Positions 15,375 to 59,290 of a stretch of DNA of 64,000 nt are shown piece by piece. The notes under the pieces are model-generated. The model saw only the letters and a program-made list of their open reading frames with translations, was not told the origin of the DNA and did no database searches. A program made the position numbers and the translations under genes. Positions within the stretch are counted from its first letter, which is position 1. Each line of letters begins with the position of its first letter. The stretch is from Chara braunii (Eukaryota > Plantae > Charophyceae), in NCBI GenBank assembly GCA_003427395.1, contig BFEA01000039.1, forward strand, positions 825,293 to 889,292, in the 5' to 3' direction.

Positions 15375-15631
15375 CAGCCCGGTGTTGGCTGTTGTGCCTT
15401 GACGATCTCGCCCTTTGGACACCTGGTTTGAGGACGATTGGGCTGCCGCTCTGTCGGACTGTCCGTGGGCGAACAATTGTCGCTTTGCGACCATGCTGGA
15501 ATGGGGATATGTTATCGTATTGCCACGTTGTAAGTTGGGACTCCGCAGCGTATACTGCCCGCAGTAAATAGGCACTACTATGCGCACGTTGGAATTCACT
15601 CGCGTCTTAGTGTCGCCAAGGACCTGGCTGA
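15375..15631 (+). pseudogene. Partial diverged duplicate of ORF-X (copy of ~15985-16240)
   Basis: Translates to ...PLDTWFEDDWAAALSDCPWANNCRFATMLEWGYVIVLPR...SPRTW with two stops. Confidence 0.8.
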
Positions 15632-15871
15632 ACCGAATAGAAGTTGGGAAGCGGGGTGAAAAATGACAGAAGAAGAAGGGTGAGGGGGGAATGCATAACA
15701 CACGGAGAGAAGAATGTATGAGGAGCTCTATGTTGACAATGGGGTGTAGTGTAATATCCTTGGGAACATTCGGGCGGCGTTGCCGTCTTTGACTTCTTTT
15801 GACAATTGTTGCCTTGTGTATGCCAGCGTACGATGCAATATTAGCTGGCGAACGTCTGCCGCATCTCGGAA

Positions 15872-16843
15872 ATGGATAAACAGTCCGTTGCTACGTTTCC
15901 ATTGAAACCGCGAGCGGTTGCCCTCCAAGGGTCGAAAGAGTCAACAGAGATTGTCGGCGCCGCGCGAACAGATTTTGAAACGGATCCGTGGCTGACTGCT
16001 GTACCTTGGCGCGCTGACCCTTTGCACACCTGGTCTGAGGACGATTGGGCTGCTACTTTATCGGACTGTCCGTTGACGAACGATTATCGCTTTGCGACCA
16101 TGCTGGAATGGGGACGTGTTATCGTATTGCCCCGTGTTAAGTTGAGACCCTGGCAAATATATTGCCCACAAGAAATAGGCCCCGCCATGTGCACGCAGGA
16201 TTTCACGCACGTCTCAGCGTCGCCAAGGACCTGGCCGAAATGTTTCCGATACGAATTACTCGTTTGCGGCAGTCTTTGTGATTTCCTGTCAGAATACCCC
16301 ATGCCCGATCTGCAAACATCGTCTTGCGTGGTCTCGTACTGCTGTGTCCGCCTCATGTTGGATGGCGATCCATTCAGCAGAGTGTTGTGCGTGGCATGCA
16401 CGAACAAGGATAGAACACTGACAAACACTGTCGTGATTGCAACCTACACCACGAGGTATCTGTCCGAAGATGGTGAGAGGCTGATAACGCGGACAGTCCT
16501 AGATAACAGGATGCAAGTGGTGCCCCATGAAAGGAACCCCGATTACCGACACTGGGAAGACATTGAAACCCAGATATGTCGCATCAGAGATGCCATCTGA
16601 GAATATTTGTTACACGATTTGACGTTCGTTCGAATGCGATACGTATCTTTTTTCTCGAAAGATGCGACGTGTGGTACGCCTCGTCGACTGGCGTTCGACT
16701 CAACTTTGTCCGCATTGTATGGCTTCGACAGGAGGACTCCGCCATGCTGTAAGGTTGCCCACGTGAGTGTTGTTGTTCCCTCTCATGGTGCCGCTTTGTC
16801 CGTGCTTTCTGGCATGCCTTGGCTATATGGGATGCAAAGTTGA
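15872..16843 (+). pseudogene. ORF-X homolog (unknown ~290-aa domain), one in-frame stop at 16598-16600
   Basis: Colinear similarity to the minus-strand ORF at 51786-52658. Homology continues past the TGA to ...ALYGF (~16726). Confidence 0.8.
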
Positions 16844-19309: not shown

Positions 19310-19828
19310 ATGTCAGACTACGTTGTTCGCCATTCGCAGTGCACTTTCAGTGCATTGCACGACCATAATTGGTTGAATGATATATCCATTGATACGTACA
19401 CGGAGCTTCTTATGCCCCTGTTCCCCGACATGTTCTTCACATCGTGCTATATGTACAGCTTCACGATTGCTTGCCGAGACTACCGCTTCGCACATGATTT
19501 GCTCGTTCCGCGCGCCACTGGCCAGCCGTTTTGCTGCTTCGGGTGCTGGTTCTTCCCATTGCATCTGAACAACAACCATTGGGCATTGGCGTGTTTTGTC
19601 ATCGAAGATTCGACTCGTTGCATTTACGATAGCTATAGTAACCAACATCCATCCGTTTTCCATGATTTGCTTGCATGGCTACAAACAGAGACCACGATCC
19701 CGCAATCGCCCCTGTCCATGCAGGTCGTTTATATAGATGGGCCAATCCAGTATAATCACCATAACTGCGGCGTGTTCATGCTCGTGATGCTGCATTTTTG
19801 CTGGCTTCGCCAACATCGTCGCATGTAG
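19310..19828 (+). CDS. Ulp1/C48 SUMO-protease domain (exon; Helitron-associated)
   Basis: WLNDISID, PLHLNNNHW, IYDS, PIQYNHHNCGVF give the H-D-Q-C catalytic set. The basic/Pro-rich ORF at ~18514-18790 may be an upstream exon. Confidence 0.85.
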   Translation: MSDYVVRHSQCTFSALHDHNWLNDISIDTYTELLMPLFPDMFFTSCYMYSFTIACRDYRFAHDLLVPRATGQPFCCFGCWFFPLHLNNNHWALACFVIEDSTRCIYDSYSNQHPSVFHDLLAWLQTETTIPQSPLSMQVVYIDGPIQYNHHNCGVFMLVMLHFCWLRQHRRM

Positions 19829-21057
19829 ATGCTTTTTCGTGCTTGGATATTCCGACATACAGACGTCATCTCCATGATGAGCTTTTCATATCGTCCATCG
19901 GGCCTTTTCCGCTGCTGCCAGTTCAGCCTCCACACAGCGCTGCGTACACATGCGGCTACCGATGTCCGTCGCAGGGTGCGTTTGCTTCTCCGCCGAGCCT
20001 CTCCTTGCTCCTCCCCCCCCCCTCTTCCCCTGCCCCTCTCCCTTCCCGTTGCCAATTGTCCGGCCATCTGTTATAGGAAGAAGCGGTTTGCTGTGTAACA
20101 TTCAAGTATGCCTGCGTTTGCGTTCAACTCATGACAACATGTATTCACATTTTTCCTCTCGCGCCTAACGATGTTTATAATTGTGCATGGCTGTTTCTTT
20201 GTGATTTTGCTTGCAGGTGCGACCGACGCTTGTCTACGGGTAATGTGGTGGCGGGTTGTATTCAGTTTACTTATCCTTGTATTTTGACTCCGGAGCAAGA
20301 TATATGTATACATGCAAACACACATATTCTCCTTCCTCCTGTGTTTTTCTAGTCTCGTTTGATAGACATACATACATATACTCAGACATAAATACAGATC
20401 ATGAACCATTCTCAAACACTACCTGCGTTGTTGCACTGCGCCGCTTTAGATTCTTCCCCTTCCCCACCCCGTTTGGCTTCTGTACACCTCATCACATTTG
20501 CTGCGGTCCTTGAATCCTGTCCACGAGCAGCCCATCTATTCACGCACAACAAAAGGTTACGCTTGCTGCGGGGACGCGAGCGGGACTGCTGCCAATTCGT
20601 CAAAGCCAGCAGCCGAATGTCACAGAATGTATCGCAGTTGCGCCGCACTTGGACATGGGAACGCTGGCTAGAGCCGGTGCCATGGACCCCGGGTCTCTCA
20701 GCTTGTTGACAGATCTTGGAAAATGTTTGGCAAACAAAGAAACGCACTCAAAAACCCGAAAAAAAACTTCCCCGGGCTCGTTCCTTCGCTCTCCTTGACC
20801 CGTCTCTCAAACCAGCTCAAGACCCTGAAGCAGGTGGCGACGTATTTACGGCCCCTTTTGTCTTTTCCTTCCACGATTGTAAACCCGCGATTCGTTTTTT
20901 TGCCTTTTTCGCTTCCTAGCTCTCTCCCTCTAGTGCTTTCCTTCTCCCTCTGCTTCTTTCTCCGCAACTCTCACATATGCTACCGCTTTTTGCCCGCCCG
21001 CACCATGCGGTGGACCGCGTATTCCATCTTATTCGCACCACACTGTGCTGCGGGTGA

Positions 21058-22350
21058 AATACGGAGCGGACTCGCACAGAGACTACAGCGCAGCGAGAAG
21101 AGCGTCTATGCAAAAAACAGGCCGCGGCACGGACACGAAAACTAAACAAAACTGAGACTGTTCGCCGCGAGCGTCTGCAGCGAGACACTGCATGGCACAG
21201 GCGGGCGCGGGAAAGAAAACGTAATACGCAACGCCCTCTCATGGGTACGGGCGCGACGTTGCTTGCGCCCCCCGTTTCTTGTTTCAGCTCTCAGGCGAGC
21301 CCAGCGACACTGCCTTCGCTTGTGAAGCCTGTCAGACTCAAACAATTGGCCCGCATGAAACGCCCCCCCCCCCGCGGCACTGCCTTCGCTTGTGAAGCCG
21401 CTCAAACAATTGGCCCGCATGAAACGCCCCCCCCCCCTCCCTCCGGCACGCAGCTCTCTGCAGGCGTCCGTTTCCCCACTCTGCATACGCGACCTCTCCT
21501 GTGGCGTCTCGAACCCCGAGCCATCAACCCCGACAACTGTCGCTGGCCATTTTACGGAAGCTGTGATATATTCATGTTTACAGCAACTAGCCCGGGATCG
21601 AGAGGCACGTTATTCATTGCGCCCGCCATTCTCCTCCACCGTTTCGCCAGCGTTGAAAAACGCGATCGCAGGCTGTCTGGTTGACAAACTCAGTCCCGTT
21701 AAGCTTGGGGAGTTTGTATGATGTGTGTGTGACGAGTTGGTGTTATGCACTGAAGTCAATATCCATTCATCTTCTAAGACAGACGTCATTGACCGTATGC
21801 GTGCAGTTTTATATAATTTCAATTCATCGTTGCATCCAGATCTTGTGCAGCATTATAGCTGCGAAGACTTGTCTTCGGCTTTCTCGAGCATCATGTTGTC
21901 GCGAAATGGCATTGTGCAGCTCGCCGACGCAGCGTCCATTTCAACATATGCGACGCTTGCGAATAACCGCTCTTTTGCTCGCACTCCCGGCCTCACCTCC
22001 TGAAATTCGCAATCGCCAATCATTTTTTTGTCGGTGCGCTGCCTCGTGCTTTGCAGAGTGCGACCTGGCCAGAGCTTCTTATGACAAGCCTGACAAATAT
22101 CCTCGGCCAGACGAGAGTGATGCGCGGTGGGTGGCATCGTTCGATACTTTCCCATCTGCTCGTTTTCGACTCCGTGCCCGGGCTGGCAACTACTTTGCTT
22201 CCCAGGTCGATAACAAAAGATACGTTCTATCGCATTATCTTGGCAGGACCGTTTACAGATAGATGGTCAAGTGACACGTATTAAGAAGCTACATTGCGTC
22301 AGACATTCGATGGTGGAAAACCTGCTCGACTTTTACACGACGTTTAATGT
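21058..22350 (+). pseudogene. RepHel N-terminus: STPR-like repeats and DUF6570-like domain
   Basis: TETTAQREERL...TETVRRERLQRD (21058-21230). KFAIANHFFVGALPRALQSATWPE (~22000-22075). HCVRHSMVENLLDFY..FNVLY (~22290-22360). Confidence 0.7.
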
Positions 22351-22549
22351 CCTCTACTCTAAGACTTCTGTAAAACGTGATGACGAGGTTCTTGACAGCA
22401 TTCCGCGTAACGATCCCACGTACGTGCTGGCGCTGGTCATCTGAGACCTGTCGAATGATCACACCTATGCAAAGCTATTAGGCCGCGAACAGGATGGTCT
22501 TAACGCCCCTCCGGGCATAACCACCGAGACAACTTACATTGAAAAGTCT

Positions 22550-24920
22550 GTGATCTTTTCGCACGCCACTGCGTCGCTGGATCCGATTGTCGAACAGCGT
22601 GTAGTCGAACTTTTGAAGGTTGGGCGAGCCAACGACCCGGTTTTCATGCTCCACACGTCTTTCAAATTCGCCAACCTTTTCGAGCCGACGCTGGAAGCCA
22701 AAATGTTCCAGCATATGTTTCCATATGGGTGCGGCCATCCCGGCGAAGAAGGACAAAGAGTCGGCGCTTCGCGCCAGCTCTGCGAGAGGCATTATTGTCT
22801 GCTGAGCTCCAGGCGCTTTGCGCAGGATCCGTATTATTGCATGGCCGCTTTCGACCATCTTTCGCTAAATCGCGGATACACGTTTTCGCACCTCACGTGC
22901 AGAATGCAACCCCATTTGCATCAATCGATCGCCGGAGTCACGACCAAAATGCCGAGCAGAGGTTTGGAAAACACCCGTCGACAAACGGTCGGCTTAAAAA
23001 TACCCGATACGGATCCGGCAGTCATAGATCTGCTTCGTCATGTTGACTGCGCTTCGACGTATGTTTGGGGCAGCAACGCAGAGCGACGTGCACGCCGGCA
23101 AGAGGCATTCGCCACCTGCGACCGTTTCGGTCAGCCGACACTTACACTTTTCGTTATGCTGACCCCGAACACTGACACCTCGTTCGCGCTTGCGTCGTAC
23201 GTTGGTCCTCTCGACATGGAAACATTCTACGCTGTGTTGATCGATAACCCCGACGTCCAGACAGAAGATCTCAAGCGCTTATCCATGGCCGACAATATTG
23301 CTTCGGCACGGCTTTTTGATCGGCTGATGTCCATACTTTTTGACGAGGTGCTGGGATTTGACTGCACGACTCAGCAAACTGTACCTGGGGGCGGTCTCTT
23401 CGGGCCCGTGCGGGCATATTTTGGAATGGTGGAAACGCCGGGCCGCGACACATTGCATTTGCACTGCCTCGTCTTGCTTGAAAATATGCCACCCACAACT
23501 CGTGATTTCGATAATTTACTGGAAGCAGATGCGTCTCTCGCTGATCGAGTCACGAAATACGTGGACAGCATTGTTTTTGCGTCTGCAGCCCGAGATGTTT
23601 CTCGTCTGTCTTGTGCACACTGCTATGCACTGGCGCCAGCTTACAAAATACATACGCTCCCGCAGTCAGCCCGGTGCTCGCCATTCCGAAAAGGCAAACC
23701 ATAGTCGTTGGTCGAACCGCCGAGCGCAGAATGTGCACATTGTCATGCTTTAATTAGCTCGCACCAGATGCAGCGCTAGGGCATCCTGGAAGCTATTCCG
23801 TCTCCCGCTTATGATGATATTCGGTGGCAGAACACTGCTCCTGCTTCGTACCCTAAACTCACAGACGATCCATTCTACACAAACGCAACAAGCAACAGAA
23901 TGCTTGCACTGTTGCCGAGCTTGCTTTCTTTTTGGTCAGCACTGCCATTGATTTTTTTCCTTGTCCAAATACACCACTGGGCTCAAACCGAGTCGTGTTT
24001 CAAGAATACCCGTATGAACAAAAAAGCAAAAGTCTGTCGTTATCTGTTCCCTCGTACGCATTGCGAACGGACAATTTTACGTGATTTCGGTGGGCAGAGG
24101 TGGCAGACCATATCTTCTATTGTTACAAATATGCGACCATGCTGGAATGGGGATATGTTATCGTATACGCGATTTCGTACAACCTTTGTTCATTGGCGCA
24201 GAGGTGGCAGACCATATCTTCTATTATTGCAGATATGCGACCAAAGACCAACATAAAATTAACTTCAAAGTCGCACTGCGCTTGGCTGCGTTCGATGCAC
24301 GCTGCGAGCGTGAAAAGTTGGCAGAGGAGCGTACGCAAATGTCAGCGAAAACGAAAACACGTCGCCGCCTTGCTTCTCAACTTTTCAGTATAACGAACAA
24401 ACAAGAAACCGCTGGCCCATTATGTGCACTGTATCTGCTACGGCAGTCGTGCGCGTATCTTAGCCACAGTTTCAAAACACTCCCTCTTTTTCACATGCTG
24501 AAATAGCTGCAAAATCACCCCGACACTTTGTGTTCGCTGGAGAGAGCGCCTACGAGCTTTGCTGTCAAACGACCTTTGGATGATTACATTTTACGGCCAT
24601 TGGCATTGACGCATCTGTTCCTTATGAATTCACTATGTATTTTTACACTTGTACGAAATCAGCTGCCTCCACAGTTGATGGTAGCTTCCTTTAAAACCAT
24701 CCGTTGTATAATCGCAAAGCATTGGCACGCCGAAGACTTTCTGCAATCCCTGTCATGCCTTATTCTACACGCGTTCTTGATTTCAGAACATGCGACGACG
24801 ATGCCGCCAAAACTTTGCACGCGCAACTGTCACTATTGCTATTCAAACCCTTCCGGATTCTGACGGATTTAGTTGCGCCCGACAACACATGGCATGATGC
24901 TTTCCTTTTATTCTACGAAT
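22550..24920 (+). pseudogene. Helitron Rep (HUH endonuclease)
   Basis: MFPYGCG, RRFAQDP, FGQPT..LFVMLT (motif 1), ETPGRDTLHLHCLV (HUH motif 2), CRYLFP, YYCRYATKDQ (motif 3), DDYILRP, LLLFKPFR. Stops and frameshifts are present. Confidence 0.9.
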
Positions 24921-25155
24921 AGATGCCTGCATTTCTGTGCGTTGTTTACCTACAAATGCAAGACTACCATCTCGCACAAGAACGTGCAGCAGAAATGCGC
25001 AAACAAAGAGCACCCGAGCAAACTGCAGACGTTCTCTATGCAGACTCCTCGGATGGGATGTCTGACGGCTCATCGAACGCATCTATACCAATGTGTCCTC
25101 CTTCTGACAGTGACTCACAAAGTAGCGCGGAGCCGGGGATGCCATAATCACGTCA

Positions 25156-27170
25156 ATGATAGTCGATAGCTATGCGTCGGGTTTGTCGTCTGAATTGATG
25201 ACGCGCTGCGCAACAATCACACTGAATACGTATAAGAGCTTTGCGTCGGGAGACTCATCATCGACCAGTTGTTTCTTGAGACAAACCATTGGCGATCTTA
25301 ACACCATCCATGCTTGGGCAAAAGCAGCGCCGCCATTGGTAGAAGATGTCGGTGCTGTCCCTGACGCCTGGGATCGGCTGCCTCGGCCCACTCGTCTCCG
25401 CCTAATCACAAACGCGCTTCAACCTTGGAATAAGGAGTTCGTCGACAATCCCACCACAAAGCCCGCTTCACCGCCTGGCTCCTTGTTCCCTACAATCTCT
25501 GATGTCTCGGTGCAGTTCTCGCTCAACCGCAAACAACACCTTGCTTTCTTTCTTTTGGCTGATTCCCTTCTCAAGATCTGGCTCTCCAAAACGACAGCTG
25601 AAGACATGGCTACGCCAATGTTGCTGCCAGCTATGGCCAGCGTAATTGAAAAACAGCAGCTCCTTATGTTTCTTACCGGAGAGGGTGGCACCGACAAATC
25701 CCACGTAGTCGCTGCCATCGATGCCTTTGCTAAAAGATGGCAGTATCCACACAACGTTGTCAAAACTGCAATGACTGGCAAAGCTGCAATTTCCATCGCC
25801 AGGGTGACATTCCATAGCTGGTTCGGGATCCACAACCTCGAAGCTGATTACTGTTTCGAACGTCGTCAGGCGCAACTAAAAGGCATACCCGGCTCAATGC
25901 CAGAACTAGATTTACTCATCATCGATGAGTTCAGCATGATGAACAAAGATGCGTTCCTTCGACTTGACCAAGCTCTGCGCGCAGCCAGAAAGCTGGATGT
26001 CCCTTTCGGTGGTGTGCATATCTTGCCGATGGGAGACTTTTTCCAGCTTCCCCCTGTTAACGGCATGCCAGTGTATTCTGATCCTTTATTGGATAAGGCA
26101 GACACGACCGCCGACCACGAAGCGTTCAAGATCTCGCGTCTCTTCGACATGGTTGTTGTTCTAACTGAGCCCGTTCGCTTTAGATCAGACCCCGAATGGG
26201 GCTGCCACTGTAAAAATGCCAGACGGGGCATATGGGGAAACAATTTTATAAATATCTTCAACAGTAGATTTTTGGAAAACATCAACCCCGCCTTGAGCTG
26301 AAATTTTATCAATCCAAAAGGTGGTCATTTCCCTGTTTTCGTTGTCCCGGATAACGACAATCGTACACAGCTACTACATTCGTTTACACGCATGTTGTGT
26401 GCATTGCTGCCTTGTGATCATCAACCTGTTCGCATCGTGGTAGACTTCGGCGCGAAATTCAAAAACAGAAAACTGCATGATATACAGTTCATAATGTCAT
26501 TGCCGGACAACAAACTCGGATGATCTGCTGCGTTCCTTGACCTTCTACCCGAAATGCCGTTTTTGTTCACCCAGAACGTAGATCCCGCTCGGGGCATTGC
26601 AAACGGAACCTTCGGTATTCTGCATTCTTTACAGTTCCCTGAACATACGACGTTTGCACTGTTCCATGACACGAATGCAAACATTCGCGTGCTGCTTCCT
26701 AGTTCCCCGCCGGACCTCGCTCTTGTGCTCGTCCCCCATCGTTCCGCATTCGAACAACTCCCTGATGCGCTTTCTGCCGCCCTGCCTTTGGATGTTTACC
26801 CGGTGTTCAGACAGCGGCCATACGACTCTGCGAAGGTCGACCTGCCGACCGGTGCAAGAATGCCCTAGAGAACATGCCACGTGCGACCTCTCCAATTTCC
26901 ATTCGTGTCTGCTGTCGTTTTGACCGTCTACAGGATCCAAGGAGAGACATTGACAACTCTCATTGTCGCCGAATGGAAAGCACGTCTCGATGCTAGCCAC
27001 AAACGAAAACACTATGTCCTACAATAGGATTACATCATTGTCTTCCGTGTTGTCAACCGTTCTGCTTTAGTCACTTTAAAGTCATTCACAAAGGACCTCG
27101 CAGCCTTTTTCCAACCAAATCCAGCTGTTGTCCGTGAGCAATTGCGCCTTGACAGACTTTCGGATCTTAC
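25156..27170 (+). pseudogene. PIF1-family helicase of the Helitron
   Basis: LNRKQ, TGEGGTDKS (Walker A with G>D), AMTGKAA, LIIDEFSM, PFGG...GDFFQLPPV, RFRSDP, GIANGT, QFPF...TVYRIQGETL. Several stops. Confidence 0.9.
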
Positions 27171-27384
27171 CCTGTCCCCTGCTGCGGCCTTTTGCTCTAC
27201 CTCCGCTTCGAGGCCGCAAATCGCCGCTCGTCCGCTTGAAGCGTTCGATGCTTCTGTCGTTAATGCTGGACCCCCGAACGACGTGTTTGCAGACTAGACA
27301 ACCCCAACTGGTAAACGGTCGCGCGCGCCGACACCTCCTGCTGTTTCGAGGACTATTCTGCCATCACAGCTGAGCCCACGGTCT

Positions 27385-28280
27385 TTGCCATTCTCTATCT
27401 ATCCATCTGTCCATGAACAGCCGCAGCTTAAAAAACGTTCGTGCCTTCTCCCTTCCTATCTGGGGCCTCGAATTGCCATTTCTTCAAGCGAAACCTCCAA
27501 TTCCTCTCTCACTGGTGACAGACTCTCGAACGATGCCCTCGTCGAGCAGACAGCCTCGGTGCCTGAGCGGTCGCGCGCGCCGATGCACGCTGGCGACGTT
27601 GCTGCTTCGACAACCGTTCCACCATTGCAACTCGACCCGCGACCTATGCTATTCTCTGTTTGTCCATCTGTTCCCGTTGTGTCTTGGACGCCGCCTCACG
27701 GCGAGTCGCAATTTACGGCAGACTGTATATACCGTAACCTCCATGGAACAGCGTGGCTTAGTGACATTCCCATTGGGGACTATATGGACTTGCTGATGGA
27801 CACTTTTCCATCAGTGCTCGCCGTGAACAGTTTTACGTACGCCCACGGGATCGCATGCAATGACTTCTCGTTCGCCGACCAAAACATTGACGCTCGGTGC
27901 CATCCAAGACTCGCCTCTACATTTGCACATCTTTTCCTCCCTCTGCATATGCATGGTAATCATTGGGCACTTGGGTACATTGATATAAAAAACCAGCAAT
28001 TATTCTTCTATGATAGTAGCCTTGGCCACTCCGACGCTGTGTTTTCTCGAAACATGCGCCAGTGGCTGTGTCATCGTTCTGATGCTTTCAATGCCCTTGC
28101 CGCCATATAATGCTTCAACATTCGAGGCCCTGCTCAAACAAACTCATATGATTGTGGTGTTTTTATGCTGGTTATGATTCGACATTTGTTGATCGGGCCT
28201 TCCCACCTGCCTATAAACAATTTCGGCCAACAAGATATACGATTCTATCGATCGTTCATTCACGACGAACTTATAACCAA
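27385..28280 (+). pseudogene. Second Ulp1/C48 SUMO protease, C-terminal to the helicase
   Basis: WLSDIPI, PLHMHGNHW, FYDS, then after a stop/frameshift PAQTNSYDCGVF. Paralogous to 19310-19828. Confidence 0.85.
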
Positions 28281-43257: not shown

Positions 43258-44041
43258 CTATCTAATCATGGACAAAATGTCAAATGTTATTCTAAGCCTT
43301 ATATCAGAAATATTGGCTTGTGAGAAAGTAAATGGAGGGAAGTGACTTCTTGCAAGCAAAGATGAAAAACCTAACATAAAAACACTACAACTACAAGCAT
43401 CCTCTTGAGCAGGAATTTCATCTACTAACGTATCAAAGGAGGATGTAGGTCCGTCCACATGATATATTTTACGAAGATTGTGTCGATGAAACTCCGCTTC
43501 GAAAAAATATTCCAAACGTTCAAGGACTAAAACATAGTCAGCACGAGGGAGAGAGTCTATGAAGTGAAATTTACAGTTCGGACCGTCTATGCTGACATAA
43601 GCTAACGCCCAGTGATTTCCAAAATGAAGAGTGATAATCACTAAGTCATAATAAAAAAGATTTGTGTCCTTCACCCATTTCATCCCTTCGAAATATGCGG
43701 TTTCAAACCTCAAAGGACCTGAAAATCGAGTGAAGAAAAAAAAATTGAAATGTGCACAAAAGGAACTCTATCTCTTGTCACTTCTGTACATGCCGAATCA
43801 ACCTTGATGTGATCATTGGTGATCTGGACGGCTAGCAGGTACAAATTGACGACTTCGTCATTTAGCCATTTCTCATCCTCGACGATGACCATGATGTCTT
43901 CCTTTCCCACCTTTCAGCTCCCCTAGTAATCGATAATGCCGTATGCTTCATTGTCTTCGCTGCTGCCTGTAATCATGTCAAGATACTCCTTTTCTTCTAC
44001 GGTGAGACATTTTGTTGCTAAACGAATTTGGAGGTCATGAA
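43258..44041 (-). pseudogene. Ulp1/C48 SUMO protease, last exon of the giant minus-strand gene
   Basis: WLNDEVVNLY, LHFGNHW, FIDSL, PAQEDACSCSVF. GT..AG introns fit at 44525-44430 and 44121-44042. Stops and a frameshift are present. Confidence 0.9.
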
Positions 44042-44525
44042 CTGCATACAAACACACATATAAACAACAATGGAACGACTAAGACTTCATACAAAAACGA
44101 ACTTTTCGTTATGTGATGTACGACGTAGACTCGAGTTCATGTTTTTGATTGTCTATCTGTTTCGCTATCAGAGCTGTCATCCACAATAGATAAACTGCAA
44201 CCTTCGCGATGCAATTTCTTCCCTTCTTTGAGGCTTATTCCAACAACTTTAAACATCCTTAGGGCAGCTGGCTTCATAGATGGAAATGTCATGGGTGTAA
44301 GTCTTCTTCTCTCTTTTTTGGGCAATAACGGCAAAGTCGATAAGGCTTGCAAGCCACGACGAATAATATTCTTCTCACTCTGCCTTTGCGAACGTACATG
44401 CGTCGTTTTTCACAGTTCTTTTCGTCGCTCTGCATATTTAGCAATATAAAACGACAATGATTGACAAGACAAAACATTATGAGTTTAAGTTCAATTTCCC
44501 ACATAATTGCAAATAAGAGATACAC

Positions 44526-46200
44526 AATATTCTACTTCATTTCTTCTCATGATCGAGTGCACGGTTGCAAGCCTAGGGAAAAGATTAGTTCCTATGAGAT
44601 GAGTGCATGTACCCCCTAATCCGCATAAAGTATTAGATATTTCCTTAGAGATAAGTATGTGCTTACCTCGGTGGCTCACTAACGCTTTGTGTTCAACACG
44701 ACCTTCTATCACCCCATGCGATGGTGTAAAAGGAGATTCGTCGATAGATATCACGAGGTTAGCAGACTGTTGTGCTTCTGATTTTGCAACCATAAGTTCA
44801 GGCTGTACAAGCGTATGTTGCTCCCGTGTACTTAGTACTATATATCCTTCATCCTCTTCGATGGCCTGTACATTGGCAGTTTCGTTTGCACCTGCAGTCG
44901 CGCTTTCATTCTTTATGTCCAGAGAGACTTCATGCTCATCTTTCTCAGCTGGCATATCCAATGACATCTGTAATTCTACAAGTGCACCAGTATTATTCAC
45001 TTGCGCAGTAACACTTTCGCTCGCCAACACAGTGGTCGCCCAAACTTGGTCATCCGGAAGGACGTCCTCGACACATTTCGGCAGTTCTCCATGACTTACG
45101 CCCTTGACGCTTGCACCGCCGCTTCCTCCCAAATCATGACCACTTGCATCGCCTTTCGATCCCCTGCCATGTGCACCGCTGCTTGGTCCTAATCCCAGAG
45201 GCGAACCCGATCCCCTGCAATGTGCACCGCTGCTTGGTCCTAATCCCAGAGGCGAACCCGATCCCTTGTCATGTGCACCGCCGCTTGGTCCTGATACCTT
45301 TCCCTCTGTTTCTTGACGCCCTTGACACATTTCGTGGTTTTGCAGTTCACCATGACTTATTGGCTTTCCACTTGCACCGACGCTCGGTCCCAGACCCTTG
45401 CTACTGGCAGTGCCCCGTGGTTCCGATCCCTTGCCATGTTCACCACCACTTGATCTTGTTCCCTTGCCAAGCGCACCGCCGCTCGATCCTGATCCCTTGC
45501 CACTCTCATCGTCGCTCGCTCCTTTCCTTTCCCCAACTTTGTCTTCAAGTTCCTCTTCGATACGCCAATTATATCCAAAAGCTGGACTTGTTTCTCGATC
45601 ATAAAACTCTTCCAGATACTCAAGCCATCGAGATGTTTTGAATTCCTGAAAGATTTCGTCTGTCCTTGCATCCAGTCTTGATTGAGAAACCTTCGGATTA
45701 AGTCGCAGTAGTCGCTTGCCAATCTTATTTTTGGCGTGTGTGACAAACTTGGATCGTGACATACGTCTGTGGAGGCAAAATTGCCACTCCCCTTCTTCTT
45801 TTATAGCCATTACCCAGTTCCCTCTCGCCAATCCAGGTTGAAAGTGGTGGGGGTGCCATATAATGTGATGACCCCATACGTTGTCAGGCATCACCGTATA
45901 ATCGTCTCGACACACAACAGGTCCAGGAAGCCGTGCAATGTCCGGAGGGATGATGTCTTCAATCTCGTACTCCAAAGGCTGGGACGGAGGTGGTTGAGGA
46001 GTTTGAGAGCGTATCAATTCCAAAACAGTAGCCGGGCTATGTGCAAGTGTTGACAGACTTGCCATAACCTCTGGGGAGGGAATTGCCTGCACCCTCGGAT
46101 CATCCCGAACTGCGCCGGAAGATAGCGCTGTTGTGTTGCCCGCCATGTAACTGGTCCGTTGAAACTGGTCCGTTGTAACTGTCATACTCGAAGCCCCCCC
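44526..46200 (-). pseudogene. Linker of the giant gene: small globular region plus G/S-rich tandem repeats
   Basis: Long open frame 44491-46353. WGHHIIWHP...W region followed by SGGAHGKGSG-type repeats (45100-45500). Confidence 0.6.
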
Positions 46201-49200
46201 CAGAACCGGACGATGTGCCCGGCGCACCCATCTTCTGCGAAGCCGAGCTACAAGCTTTTTGCCTCTCATCTGCGAAAGCCGCTTGCAAAGTACCATTTTC
46301 ACTTTCTTCCTCCGAGTCCACAAAATTGAAGCCTTCCCCAAAACAAGTTGCATAAGCTGCGATTGTAAACGCCCCGATTTGTCCGTCGAAGTATATCATC
46401 TCCAAACGGTCTAGAAATGCAACTTCCGTCTCCGCCGGTGCCTTATGATACCCCCTCAGAAGTGATTCTATTTTTCGCCTTCTGACGATATATGCACGTT
46501 CCCCTCTGTTTTGTGGCATAGTCTCGAAAAAGAACTCCCAAATGTTGACGATGTTTTGACCAACTTTGTAGATGAGATCACGCTTTTCATCATGTCGAGG
46601 AGGCGGCTTAACAAAGTTGGCGAAGTAAAGTCAACTCTTGACCATCTTGGTGACGAATTGAACGAGAAACTCGAACTTCATACCCTCCCCTTCCAGAACA
46701 ATGCAATGACGGTGACTCTTTAACAACTCCCAAATCAACGCTGCATGACCTTTTCCCAGGAAAACAACCGCCTCATCCGCAGGACAAAAATGCTCCAATG
46801 TCTACACCATCGCATTTGACTCCCTTTCCATACCTTCGTACGCAAATTTCTCCCTTAGCTCCATACCTGCCATTTTCAACTTCGTGGACGTGAAGTTCTT
46901 CTCCACGACATCAGCCAACATCTTTGGCCTTCTCTCTCTGCGCACAAGTGCTGATAAGTCATCCGCCTGCTCGCCAGATGAGCGATCTGCAGCTGGAGTG
47001 TTTGTTGGAATGTCTTCAAACAAGGGAATAGTGTTGCGGTGATAATCCCCATCGTTGGAGTACATAATGACAATCATTCTGTCTGTGTTCTCCAAAGGCA
47101 AGTTCGCAACCTTATATAAATGTTTCGCCTTCGTTTGTTGCTGACGAGTCCACTTTAGAATAGACAAGTGAATGTCAATCTCCCAACTTGTAACTCGCTT
47201 GAAAAGTGTATACTCGCAAGACCGCGGAAAGAAGCACAATAATGTCCAATAATCACCAGCCAGTTTTCCCATGAACTTCCGCAGACCATCAAAGACTTCT
47301 TCAGTCCACACCCCTATCTGGGTTGGGTGACACAAATCCAACACGGCCGTGTGGCAACTCAGATGTTTGACGACTCTGTATATTTCCTTGGAATCCATCT
47401 CGTTTGAAATATCGCTTGGTTCCCCTTGGAATGGGACGAAAACAGAGTTCACGTTCTGTCTTTTGAAATATATATATTACGCCGAGCCCGACATTCTTAT
47501 GCTTTCCGAACCCTTGGTTTCTGATCTGAGCAACAACTTGTTGACAAACTGCACGAACTCTTCTGGGCACTTCGCAGCAAGTGACGATGTTTTCTTGAAG
47601 CCCTTTTCTCCTTTTTCCTCCTCTCCTCCAAGTGTAGCCGGGAAGGTTCACACCCAACTCATGTCTTTGAAATGGCGACGCTGGTCGATCCACCTCTCAG
47701 ACGTCAATCCTTCATCAGAGTACTTATCAAACAAATCAGAAAGGTTGTTGAAGAATGGTTCCGTCCACTCTGACGACTTCCTGTGAGGGTCAGAAATGAA
47801 GACGAAGTAGTGAAACATCCTCAATATTGCTCTTTCAATCTTCACCATTTCCACATATGTTTCCGTTGAATGTTTCCCGACACGTTGAGCAGCTCCACTT
47901 TGCTTAGGAGTCAGTTTCACACTACCTGTGAGAATGTCTCGCAACAGTTGCAGCCGTTCACGCCTCCCAAGGGCTGAAAAAGGCTTCCACGCTCTGATAT
48001 CCGGATCGTGCACAGCCACGAGGTAACCAGGTCCTTTGGTACCCTGAAACCAGTGAACCGGATACGTAACTCCACCTTTCAACTCAAATCCGGATCCAAC
48101 CCTCGGTGCCTTCCCTGATTCACCTTGTTTGGTAGCAGGCTTCACAGCATCTCTCCCCGACAATTGTCCAGCTTCCCAAGCGGCGTACACTTGTTTCACC
48201 TTTTCGACAACGTCATCTGTTGCCTTTGCCAACAACATGTAGGGCCCGAGGGCATTAGACCACTGGCCGCTCCATTGAGTAGTAAGAGACATGTCAATCA
48301 AATTACAAATCCCGATCAAACGAAGAGCCTCTCCTGCAAACTTTTTATACTCTGCATTTTTCACTTCTGTCGCTGAGCCGCCTTTAGCTTCAGGACCGTT
48401 CGACTTGTGCCACAACTTCCGTATGTTCTGGATAACCACGATCTGGTGTGGCGGGGTATTCCATTTGTCCTTGGCATTCTGGAAAGTGCTCAACGTGCCG
48501 TAATTGTTCATGCTCTTATCTGGATAACAAACAGGCCTCGCGGTCCAGCGATCCAATCGGAGCTCTTGTGCGATGTCAGGGCATTCAACAAAACACCTTC
48601 TTGCCGCTGCCACGATATGCTGACCGCTGAGAGGGTAATAGTAGTACTTGTTCACAAATTCGAGGTCGAAATCATCGGGCAGCACCCTCCTTGCTCTCAC
48701 AATCCTCCCTGAAGCGTCAGTATGCAATGTATCACGGAGGGCAACTAACAAAAGGACAGTCTTCTCATACAATGTACAAACATTCATACCGGCAGCTCCA
48801 ATCAATCTCTCTCTCATAGCATCCTCACCCGATGCAACCATTGCGTCATAAATGTCGTCAACCGTCTGTTGCACAAGATAGCGTTGATTGTATCTGAATT
48901 CCCCGTCGGGGATATCCAGAATTCGGTTGAACTGGACATAAATGAATTCCATGTCTGGACATTGATTCCCACGCTCGTCCAACTCAAGGAAGAAGCCTTT
49001 GCTGAGAACACCAGAAGAAGTCACTGATGGCACATTTCTCAAACTTGGCGGCCTAGTAACTGTCTTGCCTTTGGCCTCTTCATCCGATTGNGGTTGTTCC
49101 GCTGGAAAAACGGAAGTCTTTTCCATGACACCACCTTTTGCCTTTCTTTTCTTTGGCTGCTGCTTTTTCTTCGCGATTGCCTCAGTCTCCCGTGTTCGCT

Positions 49201-49213
49201 GGACCGCCTCCAT
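46100..49213 (-). pseudogene. ParB/Srx-like domain fused to a degenerate beta-class (N6/N4) DNA-methyltransferase-like domain
   Basis: One frame with only four stops (47648-50, 47477-79, 46802-04, 46631-33). ParB-like: YNQRYLVQQTVDDI...YYYPLSGQHIVAAAR. MTase-like: HTAVLDLCHP...ERESNAMV*TLEHFCPADEAVVFLGKGHAALIWELLKSHRHCIVLE. Confidence 0.55.
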
Positions 49214-49221
49214 TTATTGCC

Positions 49222-50352
49222 TCAGTCTCCCGTGTTCGCTGGACTTTTCCTCTCTCGCCTGTGCTTCCTCTTTCCCTCAGCGAGCCCTGCAACATCTGTA
49301 TGCCCAGCCACAACCACTGTCGCGTGCACATCCCCCTCACATCCTTCGTAGCTGCTCCCATATCCTCCTGCCAGACCAACCTCCCCACCCAATTCTCTCA
49401 TAGTGTGCTCATTGTCTTCATCCTGTCCAACCAGTCCGCAGTACGGACCCTTCTCTCCGATCTGCCGAGCTTTCGGACCAGGCAGCGTATCGGGGATCGT
49501 GATCGAAGACCCTGTCTCCACGGTTTTCAAAAACACGCATTTAGGCTCTGATATGCGGTCCTCTGGATGCACAACTGGCTCTCTGCCCGCGATCACATTA
49601 CTGTCAAGAAACCCGAGGACATCAACGAGGTTAGGCAACTTCACTGTCAATGTCCCTGGTGGGTTGAACACATCAACCAGCGACTTTCCGAACCCCGCGT
49701 GGTTGGCCCATCGAAGAGCGACGTGTTTAATGTTTGGTATTCTTTCCCCTCTTCCATTCAGGACCATCGTCAACTCGAAAGTTGCAGACGACACATTTTG
49801 TCCAGTCCACCTCACAAGGCCCCCAACCGGCACAATATTGTCTTTGATGACCACGTACAGAACAAGGCCACTCGATGGTTGTCCGGTCTCCCCCACCCAG
49901 TCCAGCATCCAGAACTTGTTCTTGTGGTCAATCACGGGCACATCGTCTCGCCGACCCGCAGCAGTCGTTTCACCAGACGCTTTACGTTCGAAAGATGGTC
50001 TACGTTCTCCAGAAGGTTTACATCCGGGCACAACCTCCACTGCAGATCTCCCCTGCTGCGAACCAGACATACGTTCCTGACCCGCAGGCCCGCCAGTCAT
50101 CAACACAGCCTTATCCGGTCCAGAGCCCCGAACATGAGTCGACGGAGTGCCCGTGGAAGGTGCACCCCTCGGAACCGGGGTGCATTGCCGCTTAGACCCC
50201 GGTGCCTCCTGACTCCAAACCCCAGCGGCCGGCGTCCCCTTCAATTTTTTCGGAGATTGTTCCATGCTCCCAGAATTCTTACTTGCTCGTCGTTTACTTG
50301 CCTTCCCCTCTCCTTCCATGTTTTGCGGCGCTGCCGAATCTGAAAGCAACAC
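49222..50352 (-). CDS. Upstream ORF or N-terminal part of the giant gene (unknown globular domain)
   Basis: 376-aa open frame abutting the ParB-like ORF, with a 27-bp duplication at the junction. Confidence 0.55.
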   Translation of the reverse strand: MLLSDSAAPQNMEGEGKASKRRASKNSGSMEQSPKKLKGTPAAGVWSQEAPGSKRQCTPVPRGAPSTGTPSTHVRGSGPDKAVLMTGGPAGQERMSGSQQGRSAVEVVPGCKPSGERRPSFERKASGETTAAGRRDDVPVIDHKNKFWMLDWVGETGQPSSGLVLYVVIKDNIVPVGGLVRWTGQNVSSATFELTMVLNGRGERIPNIKHVALRWANHAGFGKSLVDVFNPPGTLTVKLPNLVDVLGFLDSNVIAGREPVVHPEDRISEPKCVFLKTVETGSSITIPDTLPGPKARQIGEKGPYCGLVGQDEDNEHTMRELGGEVGLAGGYGSSYEGCEGDVHATVVVAGHTDVAGLAEGKRKHRRERKSPANTGD

Positions 50353-51785: not shown

Positions 51786-52658
51786 CTATCCTTTCGCCCT
51801 AAAACCGTACACTGCGTTCAGGGATGAACCGTACGTTAGGAGCTGTGGACTACACAGGGTTGCAGTGGCGGAGAAGCAAGACACGTATCGCGCACGGACG
51901 AAACCACATGATCTGGCCAATGTGTGACCGATGGCGTCTCTAATGACCGTCACGTACTCCTTGACCTCCTCCCAATACCGGGGTGTGTCAACCTGCCCCG
52001 CTAGTTTCACGTCAAACTTACTGTTCCTCCAACCATGCGGTAACATAATCGAGTCCCCGTCAACGATGAGCTCATTCCTGGACACGTAAATACTTGCTTC
52101 GGCTGAAGTCTTACTTCTATTTCTTACCGAAACACAAAGAACCCTAGAGAAATAGAAACGACAGAGATCAACATGTACACAGAAGTACGACACACTCCCC
52201 ATCAAGTTGTCCTCGAAAGGAAGGGGATATTTCTCTAGAAACTGGTTCTGTTTCACGCAGTCCAACAACTCCATCTTCATCGATGGTCCCCACAAGCGTG
52301 GCGAACACGACACGTTATGCGCAGTCAACGATAAAGACAGGTCTCGGGTACGAAATACCGCAGACAACACCGGCGTGTGTTTCGTCACGAGGATGTGGTC
52401 GAGGAAGATGAATGTCCCCCATTCCTGGCTGGATGCTAATCGATAATCAGACGTCCAAGGGCAGTCTTTGATTGTGTTCTCCCAGTCTAATTCGGGCCAT
52501 GCATCGAAGAGCCTTTCAAGCCAGGGCATAACACTCATCAAGGGGTCCGTGTCGAAGTCTTCTCTACGGGCCCCAAGTACAGCTGTCTCCCGCCTTGAAC
52601 CTCGTATGTACCTCGCGCTAGCATTCAAAAGGAACGAGTAATCGAAGCGGTGAGCCAT
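51786..52658 (-). CDS. ORF-X: intact 290-aa protein of unknown function
   Basis: ATG at 52658 (MAHRFDY...) just after a tttgtag acceptor, no disruptions, full-length homolog at 15872-16730. Confidence 0.8.
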   Translation of the reverse strand: MAHRFDYSFLLNASARYIRGSRRETAVLGARREDFDTDPLMSVMPWLERLFDAWPELDWENTIKDCPWTSDYRLASSQEWGTFIFLDHILVTKHTPVLSAVFRTRDLSLSLTAHNVSCSPRLWGPSMKMELLDCVKQNQFLEKYPLPFEDNLMGSVSYFCVHVDLCRFYFSRVLCVSVRNRSKTSAEASIYVSRNELIVDGDSIMLPHGWRNSKFDVKLAGQVDTPRYWEEVKEYVTVIRDAIGHTLARSCGFVRARYVSCFSATATLCSPQLLTYGSSLNAVYGFRAKG

Positions 52659-52899
52659 CGTAAATGTCCTACAAACACAAACGGTTGACGACCACAACAG
52701 GGAGCCATTGCTAAGGTCGAACTCGTTCACACACCGAGGAGCCATCGCAGTTACACACAACAACCAGGCATTGCGAATTTCCAAAACAGAAGGAGAAAAC
52801 GCACAGAACGACAAATTCCATCCGCCGCTATCCATCGTCACGTTCGTCGCGACAAGGTCGATGACGGACAATCGACAAAGCTCAGACGGATGGCCAGAG

Positions 52900-53950
52900 G
52901 CCTTGGCGCTTGCCGAAGGTCGAGTTCGTAGAGCTCGTCTCGACAAGGGCCGGCTGGCCACTGTCAAGTCGAAGTCGATAGCCGGCCAGCTCCAACGCCT
53001 TTGACCATTGTCGAGTCGGACACGACAATGGCCAGCCCACCGTCGTCGAGCTGAACTCGACGATGGGACTGTAGGGCGTCGTCGAGTCGAAGTCGACAGT
53101 GGCCAGCAGGGGGCCATCGAGTCCAAAACGAGGGCGGCAAGCGCCAAAGCCACGGGCCATTGTCGAGTCCGACTCGATAATGGGGCGTCGTCGAGTCGAA
53201 GTCGACAGTGGCCAGTACGGCGTCGTCGAGTCGAACACGACGGTTGGCACGCGCCAAAGCCTCCGGCCACTGTCGAGTCCGACACGACGATGACCCCAGG
53301 CTGTCGACGATTTCGTCGCGCCATTATCAAGACCGACCCGACGATGAACCGAGGCCGTCGAGTTGGACTCGACATTGTCGAGACCGACCCGACGATGGCC
53401 CGGGGTCATCGTCGAGTCGGACTCGACATTGTCCGGGCTCATCGTCGAGTCGGACTCGATAATGGCCTGTGGTCTTCGTCGAGTCGAACTCGACAATGGC
53501 CCGGGGTCATCGTCGAGTCGGACTCGACATTGGCCTGTCGTCATCGTCGAGTCGAACTCGACAACGGCCTGTGGTCATCATCGAGTCGAACTCGACAACG
53601 GCCCAAGGTCATCGTCGAGTCGGACTCGACAGTGGCCGGAGGCTTTGGTTCTTGTCGGTGGTCGTGTTTGACTTGACGACGCCTTACTGGCCACTGTCGA
53701 CCTCGACTCGACGACGCCCTACTTGCCGGCTGTCGAGTTCGACTCGATGGCGGCGGGTTGGCCATTGTCGAGTCCGACTCGACGATGACCACAGGCCATT
53801 GTCGAGTTCGATTCGACAATGACCGCAGGCCATTGTCGAGTTCGACTCGACGATGACCACAGGCCAATGCCGAGTTCGACTCGACGATGACCTCGGGCCA
53901 TTGTCGAGTTCGACTCGACAATGCCCCCGTCGAGTTCGACTCGACGGCGG
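52900..53950. repeat. Array 2: ~34-bp units with 17-bp palindromic core GTCGAGTCGGACTCGAC, arranged in inverted blocks
   Basis: Period 34 at 53471/53505/53539. Arms 53183-53296 and 53607-53719 are reverse complements. Confidence 0.95.
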
Positions 53951-54229
53951 CCTCTACATGGGTGGAGATGCCACGTGGCAGCACGTGGTTGATTTACGGT
54001 GGTTTACCGTTCTCCCAGGCCTCCGCTGCTGCCTTCGATGTGGATGCTCTGAACTTCACTCCGATGCTGCGCGAACCTCCGATGTGCGAGCGAGATCTTC
54101 GTTGCGTGCTGCGCGAGCCTCCGATGTGCGAGTCAACGCTCCGCCGGCTTCGGACGCTTTGCGAACCTCCGCGACGCTCCTTTGCTCTCGACGAACTTGC
54201 AGAAATGGGAAATGGTGGGCCGACACCAC

Positions 54230-56050: not shown

Positions 56051-56380
56051 ATCGTGAGAATACGATGACGGTGGCTCTCGCCGTGTGCGCTTGTCGTGTT
56101 GTGCAATGCGATGATGCGTCGTTGTATTCGACACGAGCGAGGCGGGAGATCATCGCGTTCAACACGACAACCAGTCGCCGTGTCTCTTGTGTATCGCTTT
56201 TATTGAAGACTGTATTTTTTTCCGCATTCACGGGCCTTACATCTGTTGTGTGTGGCTAGCAGAGGTCGCGCTAAACCACATGTGTTGCACTCTACATATA
56301 CCGCATGTGATCCATCTAGCTGCGGATTTGTTACTGATATGCATGTCTTGTGCCAGTGGTCCACTGTTTTGTCATCGCAG

Positions 56381-59290
56381 AAACGTTTTAAATGGCTTGT
56401 GGTGGGCATGCACTGCGGCAAGCTGCCAGTGGAAAGCATGGACTGTGTGGCATCTAATATACTGCCTAATGATGAGTTTCCTCCGCCAGACCTGCCAATG
56501 TTTTCGCAAGACGTTCAAATAACTCCAGAATCTCCTGATCATAAAAGGTCCTGGATGGCTGCGTGTGAAGAAACCACATGCGAAACTGCATCTCCAGCCT
56601 TGAGCGGACCAGTGAAAACCTCTGGTGCAGAAGGTTCGGAAGGTCAGGGTAGGGCCGCCTCCGATAACAGGAACACATCCGATGTAGATCGTATCATATG
56701 GGTGCCGAGAAGTTTGCTACGAGATTTCGAGTGCACAGGCCTTCTGATTGGCGAGAGTGATGAAGATGGTTCGGAATCTGGTGCTTCGATGTCATCTGAC
56801 GCCAACAGTTCTCCAGACAAAATTGATCATCCACAACCTTGCGATGATGATGGCACTGACCACTACTGTCGCAACGGTATGGAGAGTTCTGATGTCATCT
56901 CTGATTTAAATGACATTTTCCCAAAACGATTGTCGTCGGAGAAGCGTCCTTATACTTTTCGTGTCAGAATGGCTCAGTCAAAGAAGATTCTGCAAACAGT
57001 TCACCAAAAAAACATTGGCGAGTGTGCGTGGACAAGTTTGTTGTAAACAAGATTGTTGCGCTCGCATGATCATAGAAGACATCAAAGCTGTCTGAAGTGC
57101 ATATTACTGTAAGGATCATAAAAGTAGAGATGCATGGTGGGTTGAAATGTTAAAGAGGTTCACCTTCGTGGAAGATGAGAAAGAGATTGTGCAACCTATT
57201 GTGGAAAAACGAAAGGTGTGTATTAGTGCATGGTGTTTCACACTGGGTGTGTGCAGGAATACATTTTTGAAAAAGAGGGCGACTTTGTCAAAAGGTTACA
57301 TTATGCCGGAGCATGGCAGCACTGGACTCAGACGCACATCTTCAACATATGCGACGATGTTCGACAAACTAAGCTCCTTTGTGTGTGACAATGGAGATTC
57401 CATGCCCAATGACATGAGGATCAAAGATCGAGAATCACGAATGGTTTTGAGTTGCCCGCTTGCTATAACAAGGTTGATATTTACAAGTCGTTGAGGTCAC
57501 AATTTGACAACCTGGGTGTCCCTTCTGTTTCTCTCCAAGTTTTCTATAACATGTGGAGAACACACTTCTGGCATGTGAAATTCCATGAAGTTGATCAAAA
57601 CTTTGCGAAATGCGAAAAGTGTGTTGAGTTCAAAGAATCTATCAATTTTGCGAAGTTCATACGTGTGCGTGATTATTTCGTTTCGGAACGCGACAAACAC
57701 TTGGACTTGCAGCTCCAACACCGTGCTGCTTATGAGGTGTGGAAGGATGAGTCAAAGAGACCAGGTTCCAACAGTTTATGCATCATTATTGACGGTATGG
57801 GCCAAAGCAAAACGAGTATTCCACACTTTGGCGGAGAAAACAAGTCGAAGGCATTCGCGAATATTCCAATGATGAAAACAAATTTAACAGCTATTATCAC
57901 ACACGGTCGTTCACCATCGGTGCATGTTCACACATGGTACCCTTGCTATCCACATAATTCCAATGTTGTGGTGTCATCCATTATGAAAGTCTTGCGTGAC
58001 ATACAGGCGACAAGCGACTTACCTCCTAAATTAAGGATACAAGCCGACAACTGTTGGAGAAAAAACAAAAACAAATACGTTTTGTCTCTGGCTGCAGCTT
58101 TGGTCAAATTTGGTTTCTTCAAAAAAACCGAATTCGGTTTTATGTTGGTAGGGCATACATATATGGACGTTGATGCCATTTTCAGTCATTTCTCTCGCAA
58201 ACTGAAAATGCACGATGCTTATACCATGCTCGACCTATTCAAACTCGTTGCCAGTTCCCAAAAAGAGCGTCCTTTGTGCACATTCATGGATGAAATTGCT
58301 GACTGGTGGGGAACTGTTAAACCCTTCCTGGTCAACAAACTGACCGGTCATACAAAGCCACATTTATTTAGGTTTTATATGGAGGATGACAATCCTCTGT
58401 TCCAGTGGAAAGAGTATTGTACTTCTCCGAACTGGTCTTCTCTAGTCTATTGCGTTAAACGAGATGAAAATAAAGCATATTCTGGACCCGAATGGCCATT
58501 TGAATATTCACCTGTTCTCCCGTCACCTATTCGACCTATTACAGAAACATCATGTGGTCAACCCGCTAAGGATAAGAATTCGGATTTCAAATCAGGAATT
58601 GAAGGCGTGAAGACGTCTGTTGAGTGGTTGGAAAACAAGTTGCACGAGTAGTTGGGAATGAAGGATGAGGTTAGCTTCTCAAAGGAGAGTGCTCTTTCAC
58701 ACTGGAAAACTTTCCTGGACACAATCGAGCAAAATTATGGGTCTGGCTTTGCAAAAACATCACTCAAGGCTGACTTTTGGCCCTCACGTGACAGAATTAC
58801 GAAGGACGATGCTGAGGATATTGATATTGTCTTCCTCTTGCAGAGCAATGAGAATAAGGAGTCGTTGTTTGTAGGGCCGGTCAATGAGCGTCCAAAAGCA
58901 GAGCTCGACCCGGTTGTGGATGTCGAAAAAGGTCAATTCGTTCTCTTGCGTTCTTCGCAAGATAATATCGATCAGGGAGTTCCCGTGTGGATGGGTAGAG
59001 TCATTTTTAATTTTGACAACGATAGGAAGTCGTCTGCTTTCAATCATGTTCTTATTGAATATTGAGTGCCACAACCTGTCGTCAAAAGTCTTTCTCTGCA
59101 ATATGCAAATGCATGGAAGAAGATATGGAAGAAAGACAACATAACAACACAGCAGTGGTAGCACGTGAACTGTGTTTTGTGGAGCTGGTCATCAAGGACG
59201 TTGCATTTGAAAAATTGAGTGCACATTCCCAAATCGGTCAGAGAGAAAACCTTGGTATGTCTTTCACTTCCAAATGATGAAGACCAATAG
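56381..59290 (+). pseudogene. Sola-like DDD transposase (DGMDQ/DNC/GHTxxDVD family), disrupted
   Basis: CCKQDCC, KVCISAWC, FAKCEKC..H..LQ..HR, IIIDGMGQ, RIQADNCWRKNKN, FMLVGHTYMDVDAIFS, PHLFRF. Two frameshifts and several stops. Confidence 0.8.

Follow-up and report, generated by a model that had tools for sequence, protein, structure and literature searches.

A probable regular accessory gene, ORF-X, in the giant DUF7869 transposons of Chara braunii

ORF-X, a gene present both in intact and in broken form in one stretch of Chara braunii DNA, is probably carried as a regular accessory gene by giant DUF7869 cut-and-paste transposons of at least 18-21 kb, while the broken form, which lies near a Helitron, is on the same reading a dead solitary relic and not exchanged cargo. 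Chara is a close algal relative of land plants and has a very repeat-rich genome. The stretch under analysis (64,000 nucleotides, positions 825,293 to 889,292 of the forward strand of contig BFEA01000039.1, assembly GCA_003427395.1) is hereafter called the window, and coordinates given without a locus name are positions in it. Its DNA is eukaryotic, rich in repeats, and contains assembly gaps.

The intact copy (X52; 51786..52658 including the stop codon, minus strand) runs from an ATG at 52658 to a TAG at 51788-51786, and its coding part (51789-52658) specifies 290 amino acids. These are the C-terminal 290 residues of a 529-aa open frame (51786-53375, minus strand) that is in itself misleading, as its initial 239 codons are tandem repeat arrays read through and are noncoding. 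The second copy (X15; 15872..16765, plus strand) is probably a pseudogene. In tblastn its 15893-16726 stretch forms a single frame whose only interruption is an in-frame TGA at 16598-16600, not a frameshift, and homology extends up to about 16744. In a BLASTP comparison of the 242-aa frame at 15872-16600 (plus strand) with the 529-aa frame, the two were found to be colinear homologues (79/252 identities, 31%, E 3e-36), and the alignment is carried on by the piece at 16607-16843 (19/34 identities, 56%, E 3e-09). An earlier note on this DNA had listed a series of motifs for both proteins, all of which are present and colinear. For the tree and the column comparisons X15 was read through its stop codon (with an X at the stop), and for the searches it was used as two separate pieces. 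Along about 270 residues of colinear motifs, 39 columns are invariant across nine open ORF-X copies; X15 departs from 10 of these, including the W of the CPW motif. Of 45 columns without variation in the other open copies, X52 differs at 6, mostly by conservative changes.

A third, partial ORF-X copy had been overlooked in the earlier note. It is a broken partial tandem duplicate of X15 (about 15376..15632, plus strand) that matches X15 residues about 38-121 with 64% amino-acid identity (tblastn) and contains two in-frame stops. At the DNA level it forms a direct repeat, in which 15379-15632 corresponds to 15986-16239 with 80% identity and a spacing of 607 nt.

Judged by database searches, ORF-X is an undescribed family of proteins about 290-330 aa long that is known so far almost only from C. 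braunii. When 1.84 billion representatives were scanned in full by HMMER with a profile of the window copies, 18 relatives were returned, 16 proteins lying at E <= 1e-10 and 12 at E <= 1e-30; X52 itself matches its Chara relatives at E 8e-58 to 1e-12. Fifteen of the relatives are C. braunii hypothetical proteins, one is a Logan contig, and two (P0017 and P0018) are ENA metagenome fragments, located on contigs of 815 and 710 bp, respectively. Like Chara genomic DNA, the Logan contig (L004, SRR11430612, 1218 bp) terminates in a (GA)n run; as its closest relative is only 47% identical, another charophyte may be its source. Searches for known families gave no assignment: Pfam returned nothing relevant for X52, X15, and the 18 family members even at E <= 10, and at E <= 0.001 no domain was found in any of the 18 database relatives, none of which therefore shows a Helitron domain. 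A word-index protein search with the 290-aa copy scored none of 541 candidates, an ESM Atlas feature search with the whole of X52 and with residues 100-313 of P0001 reached a best score of 0.82 (noise level), and a PDB sequence profile search yielded chance matches only (E > 0.8). Scans of JGI metagenomes and IMG/VR viruses with the family alignment gave pattern matches and zero confirmed relatives, and a literature search on DUF7869, Chara transposons, and GNAT genes in eukaryotic DNA transposons found nothing relevant. The earlier view of both proteins as members of an unknown family is thus upheld by Pfam, PDB, and the Atlas, and the match to an ordinary host protein family that could have overturned it was absent from these three.

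The family is under purifying selection, as had been claimed before: in six pairs of open ORF-X copies pN/pS was 0.33-0.64, with Fisher p values from 3e-2 down to 2e-17. In deep pairs, including X52 versus X15, synonymous sites are saturated (pS about 0.8, pN about 0.43). A maximum-likelihood tree places X52 on one deep branch and X15 together with its fragment on another, and among the sampled copies no close relative of either was seen. Between element subfamilies, the ORF-X lineages have diverged deeply. Copies inside one element are likewise members of different deep lineages, and the tandem paralogues described below are therefore old.

X52 is an intact resident of a DUF7869 giant transposon. 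The DUF7869-type transposase (56246..58651, plus strand; PF25273, E 3.9e-55) is encoded divergently from ORF-X in two ORFs (56246-57046 and 57452-58651). On the minus strand, X52 heads an accessory module whose ORFs share one orientation and follow in the order ORF-X, G1, G2, G3, G4, Ulp1. The large accessory ORFs of this module (44491..50352) lie downstream of X52 at 50352-49222 (G1), 49213-47648 (G2), 47452-46802 (G3), and 46353-44491 (G4), and an Ulp1/C48 protease domain (43258..43713; PF02902, E 2.6e-11) closes it. Directly upstream of X52, tandem arrays with short palindromes in their units occupy 52997-53954. A place immediately after the palindrome arrays internal to the element is the usual one for ORF-X, and such arrays precede it at other loci as well (L005 13349-13591, L007 8353-8887, L011 9025-9547, and L012 8566-9709), and their palindrome sequence varies between subfamilies.

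Eleven further Chara loci of the same assembly were searched, with 10-kb flanks, for marker proteins from the window; all of them were reached via annotated proteins, which may bias the sample to elements with gene models. A DUF7869 transposase and/or homologues of the giant proteins lie within 10 kb of ORF-X in 11 of 11 loci, which therefore all carry further parts of one element family, whereas Helitron Rep, PIF1 helicase, or a closely related Ulp1 was found in none of the 11. For these 11 loci, this is the outcome of a check that the earlier note had itself put forward, namely to map the homologues and the transposase nearest to each. A distance of at most 10 kb to the DUF7869 transposase and/or G1-G4, within a multi-copy unit, is accordingly seen for X52 and for every one of the other loci, and not for X15.

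The order of the parts differs among these loci. In L001, L002, and L003 the transposase is followed by 3-5 diverged tandem ORF-X copies, and in L009 and L010 ORF-X comes first, with the transposase about 4 kb downstream. L005 has the arrangement of the window, with a divergent transposase, ORF-X, and then G2, and in L007, L008, L011, and L012 ORF-X is followed by giant-protein homologues in window order. In L006, the homologue that follows ORF-X is that of the segment found after ORF-X in P0004, P0002, and P0015. The tandem co-oriented paralogues, part of them open and part broken, span 1873-10936 in L001, 1990-10936 in L003, and 8804-12173 in L002, and one annotated protein, P0020 (GBG71789.1), is a partial ORF-X copy fused to a full copy. 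In L007 (17130-17399) and L008 (19902-20180), too, the DUF7869 accessory module ends with a Ulp1 domain.

The ORF-X-bearing units are mobile multi-copy elements. L001 and L003 share 97% identity in aligned blocks across their 21-kb loci, and L009 and L010, which are located on different scaffolds, share 88-91% identity over at least 18 kb. The homology between the latter two stops together at about 19165 and about 19271, respectively, about 3.3 kb past the transposase, which marks a candidate element terminus. Part of the ORF-X copies are annotated as stand-alone genes, as would be expected if ORF-X were an ordinary host gene family merely near transposons. However, the sampled copies all lie in multi-kilobase repeat units with transposase, on several scaffolds and at 88-97% identity, and many of them are broken, so that we regard a host gene family as very improbable.

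A different question is whether ORF-X is a gene of its own within the element. Several of the 18 relatives are long models of 700-1675 aa that begin with ORF-X, and Chara gene models are colinear with the window from 52.6 to 44.5 kb, with ORF-X N-terminal and the G homologues following in order. P0009 joins ORF-X to G1 and P0006 joins it to G2, while P0003, P0004, and P0016 combine it with G2-G4. Altogether, eight models (P0002, P0003, P0004, P0006, P0009, P0010, P0015, and P0016) join roughly the first 100-250 ORF-X residues to G1-G4 homologues in genomic order, which suggests an N-terminal exon or domain of a giant accessory protein that would be spliced to G1-G4 and Ulp1. This reading is nevertheless rather unlikely. 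The fused models omit the C-terminal third of ORF-X, a part that is both conserved and selected, and thus look like the result of automatic prediction. In X52 and many relatives the frame is open throughout and closes with a stop codon soon after the conserved Y-G-F motif, and the annotation has P0001 and P0019 as separate proteins of 313 aa. Moreover, X52 and G1 are separated by 1.4 kb with a repeat array within it, and no giant-protein homologue was detected in about 10 kb downstream of the tandem ORF-X arrays of L001-L003.

X15 neighbours a Helitron gene set (19310..28110, plus strand) with an upstream Ulp1 (19310-19828; PF02902, E 2.6e-10), Rep (22550-23704; PF14214, E 7e-16), a PIF1 helicase (25156-26301; PF05970, E 2e-22), and a downstream Ulp1 (27385-28110; PF02902, E 1.8e-5). 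Owing to the second Ulp1 domain at 19310-19828, the set reads Ulp1-Rep-PIF1-Ulp1 and covers 19.3-28.1 kb. The Helitron thus starts further upstream than the earlier note had assumed. The two Ulp1 copies of the Helitron share only 34% identity, and the upstream one is about 30% identical to the Ulp1 domains of L007 and L008; DUF7869 elements and the Helitron hence have Ulp1 genes that are distantly related. From the end of X15 to the upstream Ulp1, which has the same orientation, the distance is 2.5 kb, with a 130-nt assembly gap in between. A search for close Chara paralogues of the Helitron Rep ORF, from which the ends of the Helitron could be drawn, gave as its best match a non-Chara sequence from ENA with 43% identity; X15 might lie inside the Helitron. 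The earlier note had placed one copy before a Helitron and the other in a transposase element, and this agrees with what was found: X15 lies co-oriented upstream of a Helitron and X52 inside a DUF7869-transposase element, and both elements include Ulp1 (PF02902 at 19310-19828, 27385-28110, and 43258-43713).

What had been concluded from these contexts, namely that ORF-X is exchanged between rolling-circle and cut-and-paste elements, is not supported. The capture of foreign gene fragments by Helitrons is well established, and X15 could be cargo in the 5' part of this one, given its co-orientation with the Helitron genes, its short distance to them, and a stretch of 35 nt in the Helitron body that the broken ORF-X duplicate shares without mismatch. 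Still, such movement is unlikely. Helitron genes are present in none of the 11 other ORF-X loci, all of which have parts of DUF7869 elements, nor do the 18 database relatives include one with a Helitron domain. Among about 15 billion proteins none is closely related to X15, which thus gives no sign of amplification with a Helitron. X15 is also broken, and one dead copy by one Helitron in a repeat-rich genome is what chance would lead us to expect. Because X15 is broken and solitary and 11 of 11 loci are non-Helitron, exchange is unsupported.

Between 1-22 kb and 28-64 kb of the window, ORF-X is the sole shared item (tblastx), and no other DUF7869-element gene was found anywhere at 1-32 kb of the window, where X15 lies (tblastx, phmmer). 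A search for terminal or flanking repeats around X15 returned only microsatellites and an uninformative 181-nt repeat of 72% identity at 8398/17060. The 35-nt piece (24132..24166, plus strand) is 100% identical over its length to 15486-15520 in the broken duplicate, 8.6 kb away, and constitutes the filler in a 104-bp tandem duplication. This duplication (24094-24243) lies in the Helitron coding region, and at its junction is the filler, joined at a TGCGACCA microhomology. The filler looks like DNA copied during template-switch repair; it shows copying between the X15 region and the Helitron and the proximity of the two sequences, and it is no evidence of an ORF-X function in the Helitron. In the best explanation, the position of X15 2.5 kb upstream of the Helitron is due to nesting or chance.

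To what ORF-X might contribute in the DUF7869 element, structure prediction offers some hints. An AlphaFold2 model built on a 26-row alignment reached pLDDT 68 and pTM 0.68, with a confidence of 75-93 over residues 80-200 and 225-285; a 4-row alignment had given a pLDDT of only 31 and was unusable. In an unbiased scan of 48,161 PDB representative chains, 49 of the top 50 were GNAT or GNAT-like, the exception being a sphingomyelinase. Human HAT1 (2p0w) aligned with Z 6.1 and rmsd 3.9 over 111 residues, which is below the level counted as clearly meaningful (Z < 8), and the S. lividans PAT (4u5y, Z 6.0), NatD (Z 5.4), yeast Hat1, RimJ, and Rtt109 were among the best chains. A second-look alignment gave weak values of Z up to 6.1 over whole GNAT domains (4nxy: Z 6.1, rmsd 4.1, 122 residues aligned). 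Foldseek against the PDB weakly matched AAC(3), GCN5, and PCAF at E about 0.06, and the ESM Atlas structures weakly matched GNAT clusters at TM 0.31-0.39. Furthermore, a BFVD viral fold search produced weak, mixed matches that included several acetyltransferases. The modelling and Foldseek comparison suggested in the earlier note has led to uniformly GNAT but weak matches (TM 0.2-0.4, Z < 8 overall) from a moderately confident model.

The predicted core resembles GNATs such as HAT1, NatD/Naa40, GCN5/PCAF, bacterial PAT, and Rim in that it aligns with whole domains over 100-130 residues in each of the structure libraries, and the model has the succession expected of a GNAT, namely three long antiparallel strands, a long helix, and two more strands. 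Unlike GNATs, it reaches a Z of at most 6.1 and a TM of at most 0.39 and has no sequence match: the Acetyltransf models of Pfam matched none of the 18 family members at E <= 10, and the PDB profile search, at the same cutoff, listed no GNAT. When the alignment was read against the secondary structure of the model, the motif of the beta4-alpha3 loop that binds the acetyl-CoA pyrophosphate (motif A, Q/R-x-x-G-x-G/A) was not recognisable before the long helix at 226-251. The stretch preceding this helix is devoid of conserved glycines, and variability is highest, and pLDDT low, in the strand-to-helix connection at 195-225, whose only invariant residues are N195, G201, and D216. ORF-X thus differs from GNATs by a variable insert of about 30 residues at the site of the motif, and the helix after the fifth strand is apparently missing from its model. 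On balance, the model makes it somewhat likely that residues about 85-285 form a GNAT-like core; an acyltransferase-type role is a tentative suggestion that we consider doubtful.

A mechanism can be proposed along these lines, in which a GNAT-like alpha/beta core, comprising residues about 85-285, would follow an acidic tryptophan-rich N-terminal motif (D-F-x-x-D-P-W ... C-P-W). ORF-X would then be an acyl-CoA-dependent transferase or, if catalytically dead, an adaptor of GNAT shape; it would work alongside the element's Ulp1 protease, and its target would be a protein of either chromatin or the transposition complex. As a whole, this mechanism of a GNAT-like transferase or dead adaptor on a protein target is possible but rather unlikely. 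The earlier note had thought of an anti-silencing or chromatin factor, with which a weak GNAT-like fold (HAT1, NatD, GCN5, Rtt109) would be compatible, though it proves nothing. In the most specific version, ORF-X would be a highly diverged GNAT acyltransferase that acetylates histones or other chromatin proteins and that, together with the Ulp1 SUMO protease and the large G2 protein, keeps transposon chromatin open, the tandem diverged paralogues reflecting an arms race with host silencing; this version is improbable.

The palindrome-bearing tandem arrays directly upstream of ORF-X in the window, L005, L007, L011, and L012 point in another direction, as ORF-X could be a DNA-binding cofactor of transposition or regulation, not enzyme-like, with the adjacent arrays as its recognition sites. 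The deep divergence of ORF-X lineages between subfamilies would agree with such a role. It is an improbable one, however, its argument being adjacency: no DNA-binding domain was found in the Pfam searches, and the predicted fold resembles acyltransferases rather than DNA binders.

Accessory ORFs are found in other large eukaryotic DNA transposons, including the Ulp1-carrying Kaonashi MULEs of plants and the PIF/Harbinger elements with their second ORF. Like these accessory genes, ORF-X is a non-transposase ORF beside a transposase, is co-mobilised with it, and is under purifying selection. Unlike them, it has no Pfam family and its sequence relatives are almost only from Chara; it can occur as 3-5 tandem paralogues per element, and it heads a module of very large proteins and an Ulp1 protease.

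The idea of a gene shuttling between rolling-circle and cut-and-paste transposons is thus removed as unsupported, and the giant DUF7869 transposons of Chara are seen to carry a constant, selected ORF-X gene of an orphan family. For genome annotation this means that the Chara models in which ORF-X is fused to downstream ORFs represent transposon genes and not host genes. If the GNAT-like fold is true, a GNAT-shaped protein, a SUMO protease, and a large protein would make up a chromatin-type toolset in one element, and DUF7869 elements would be a good system to study how large DNA transposons cope with host silencing.
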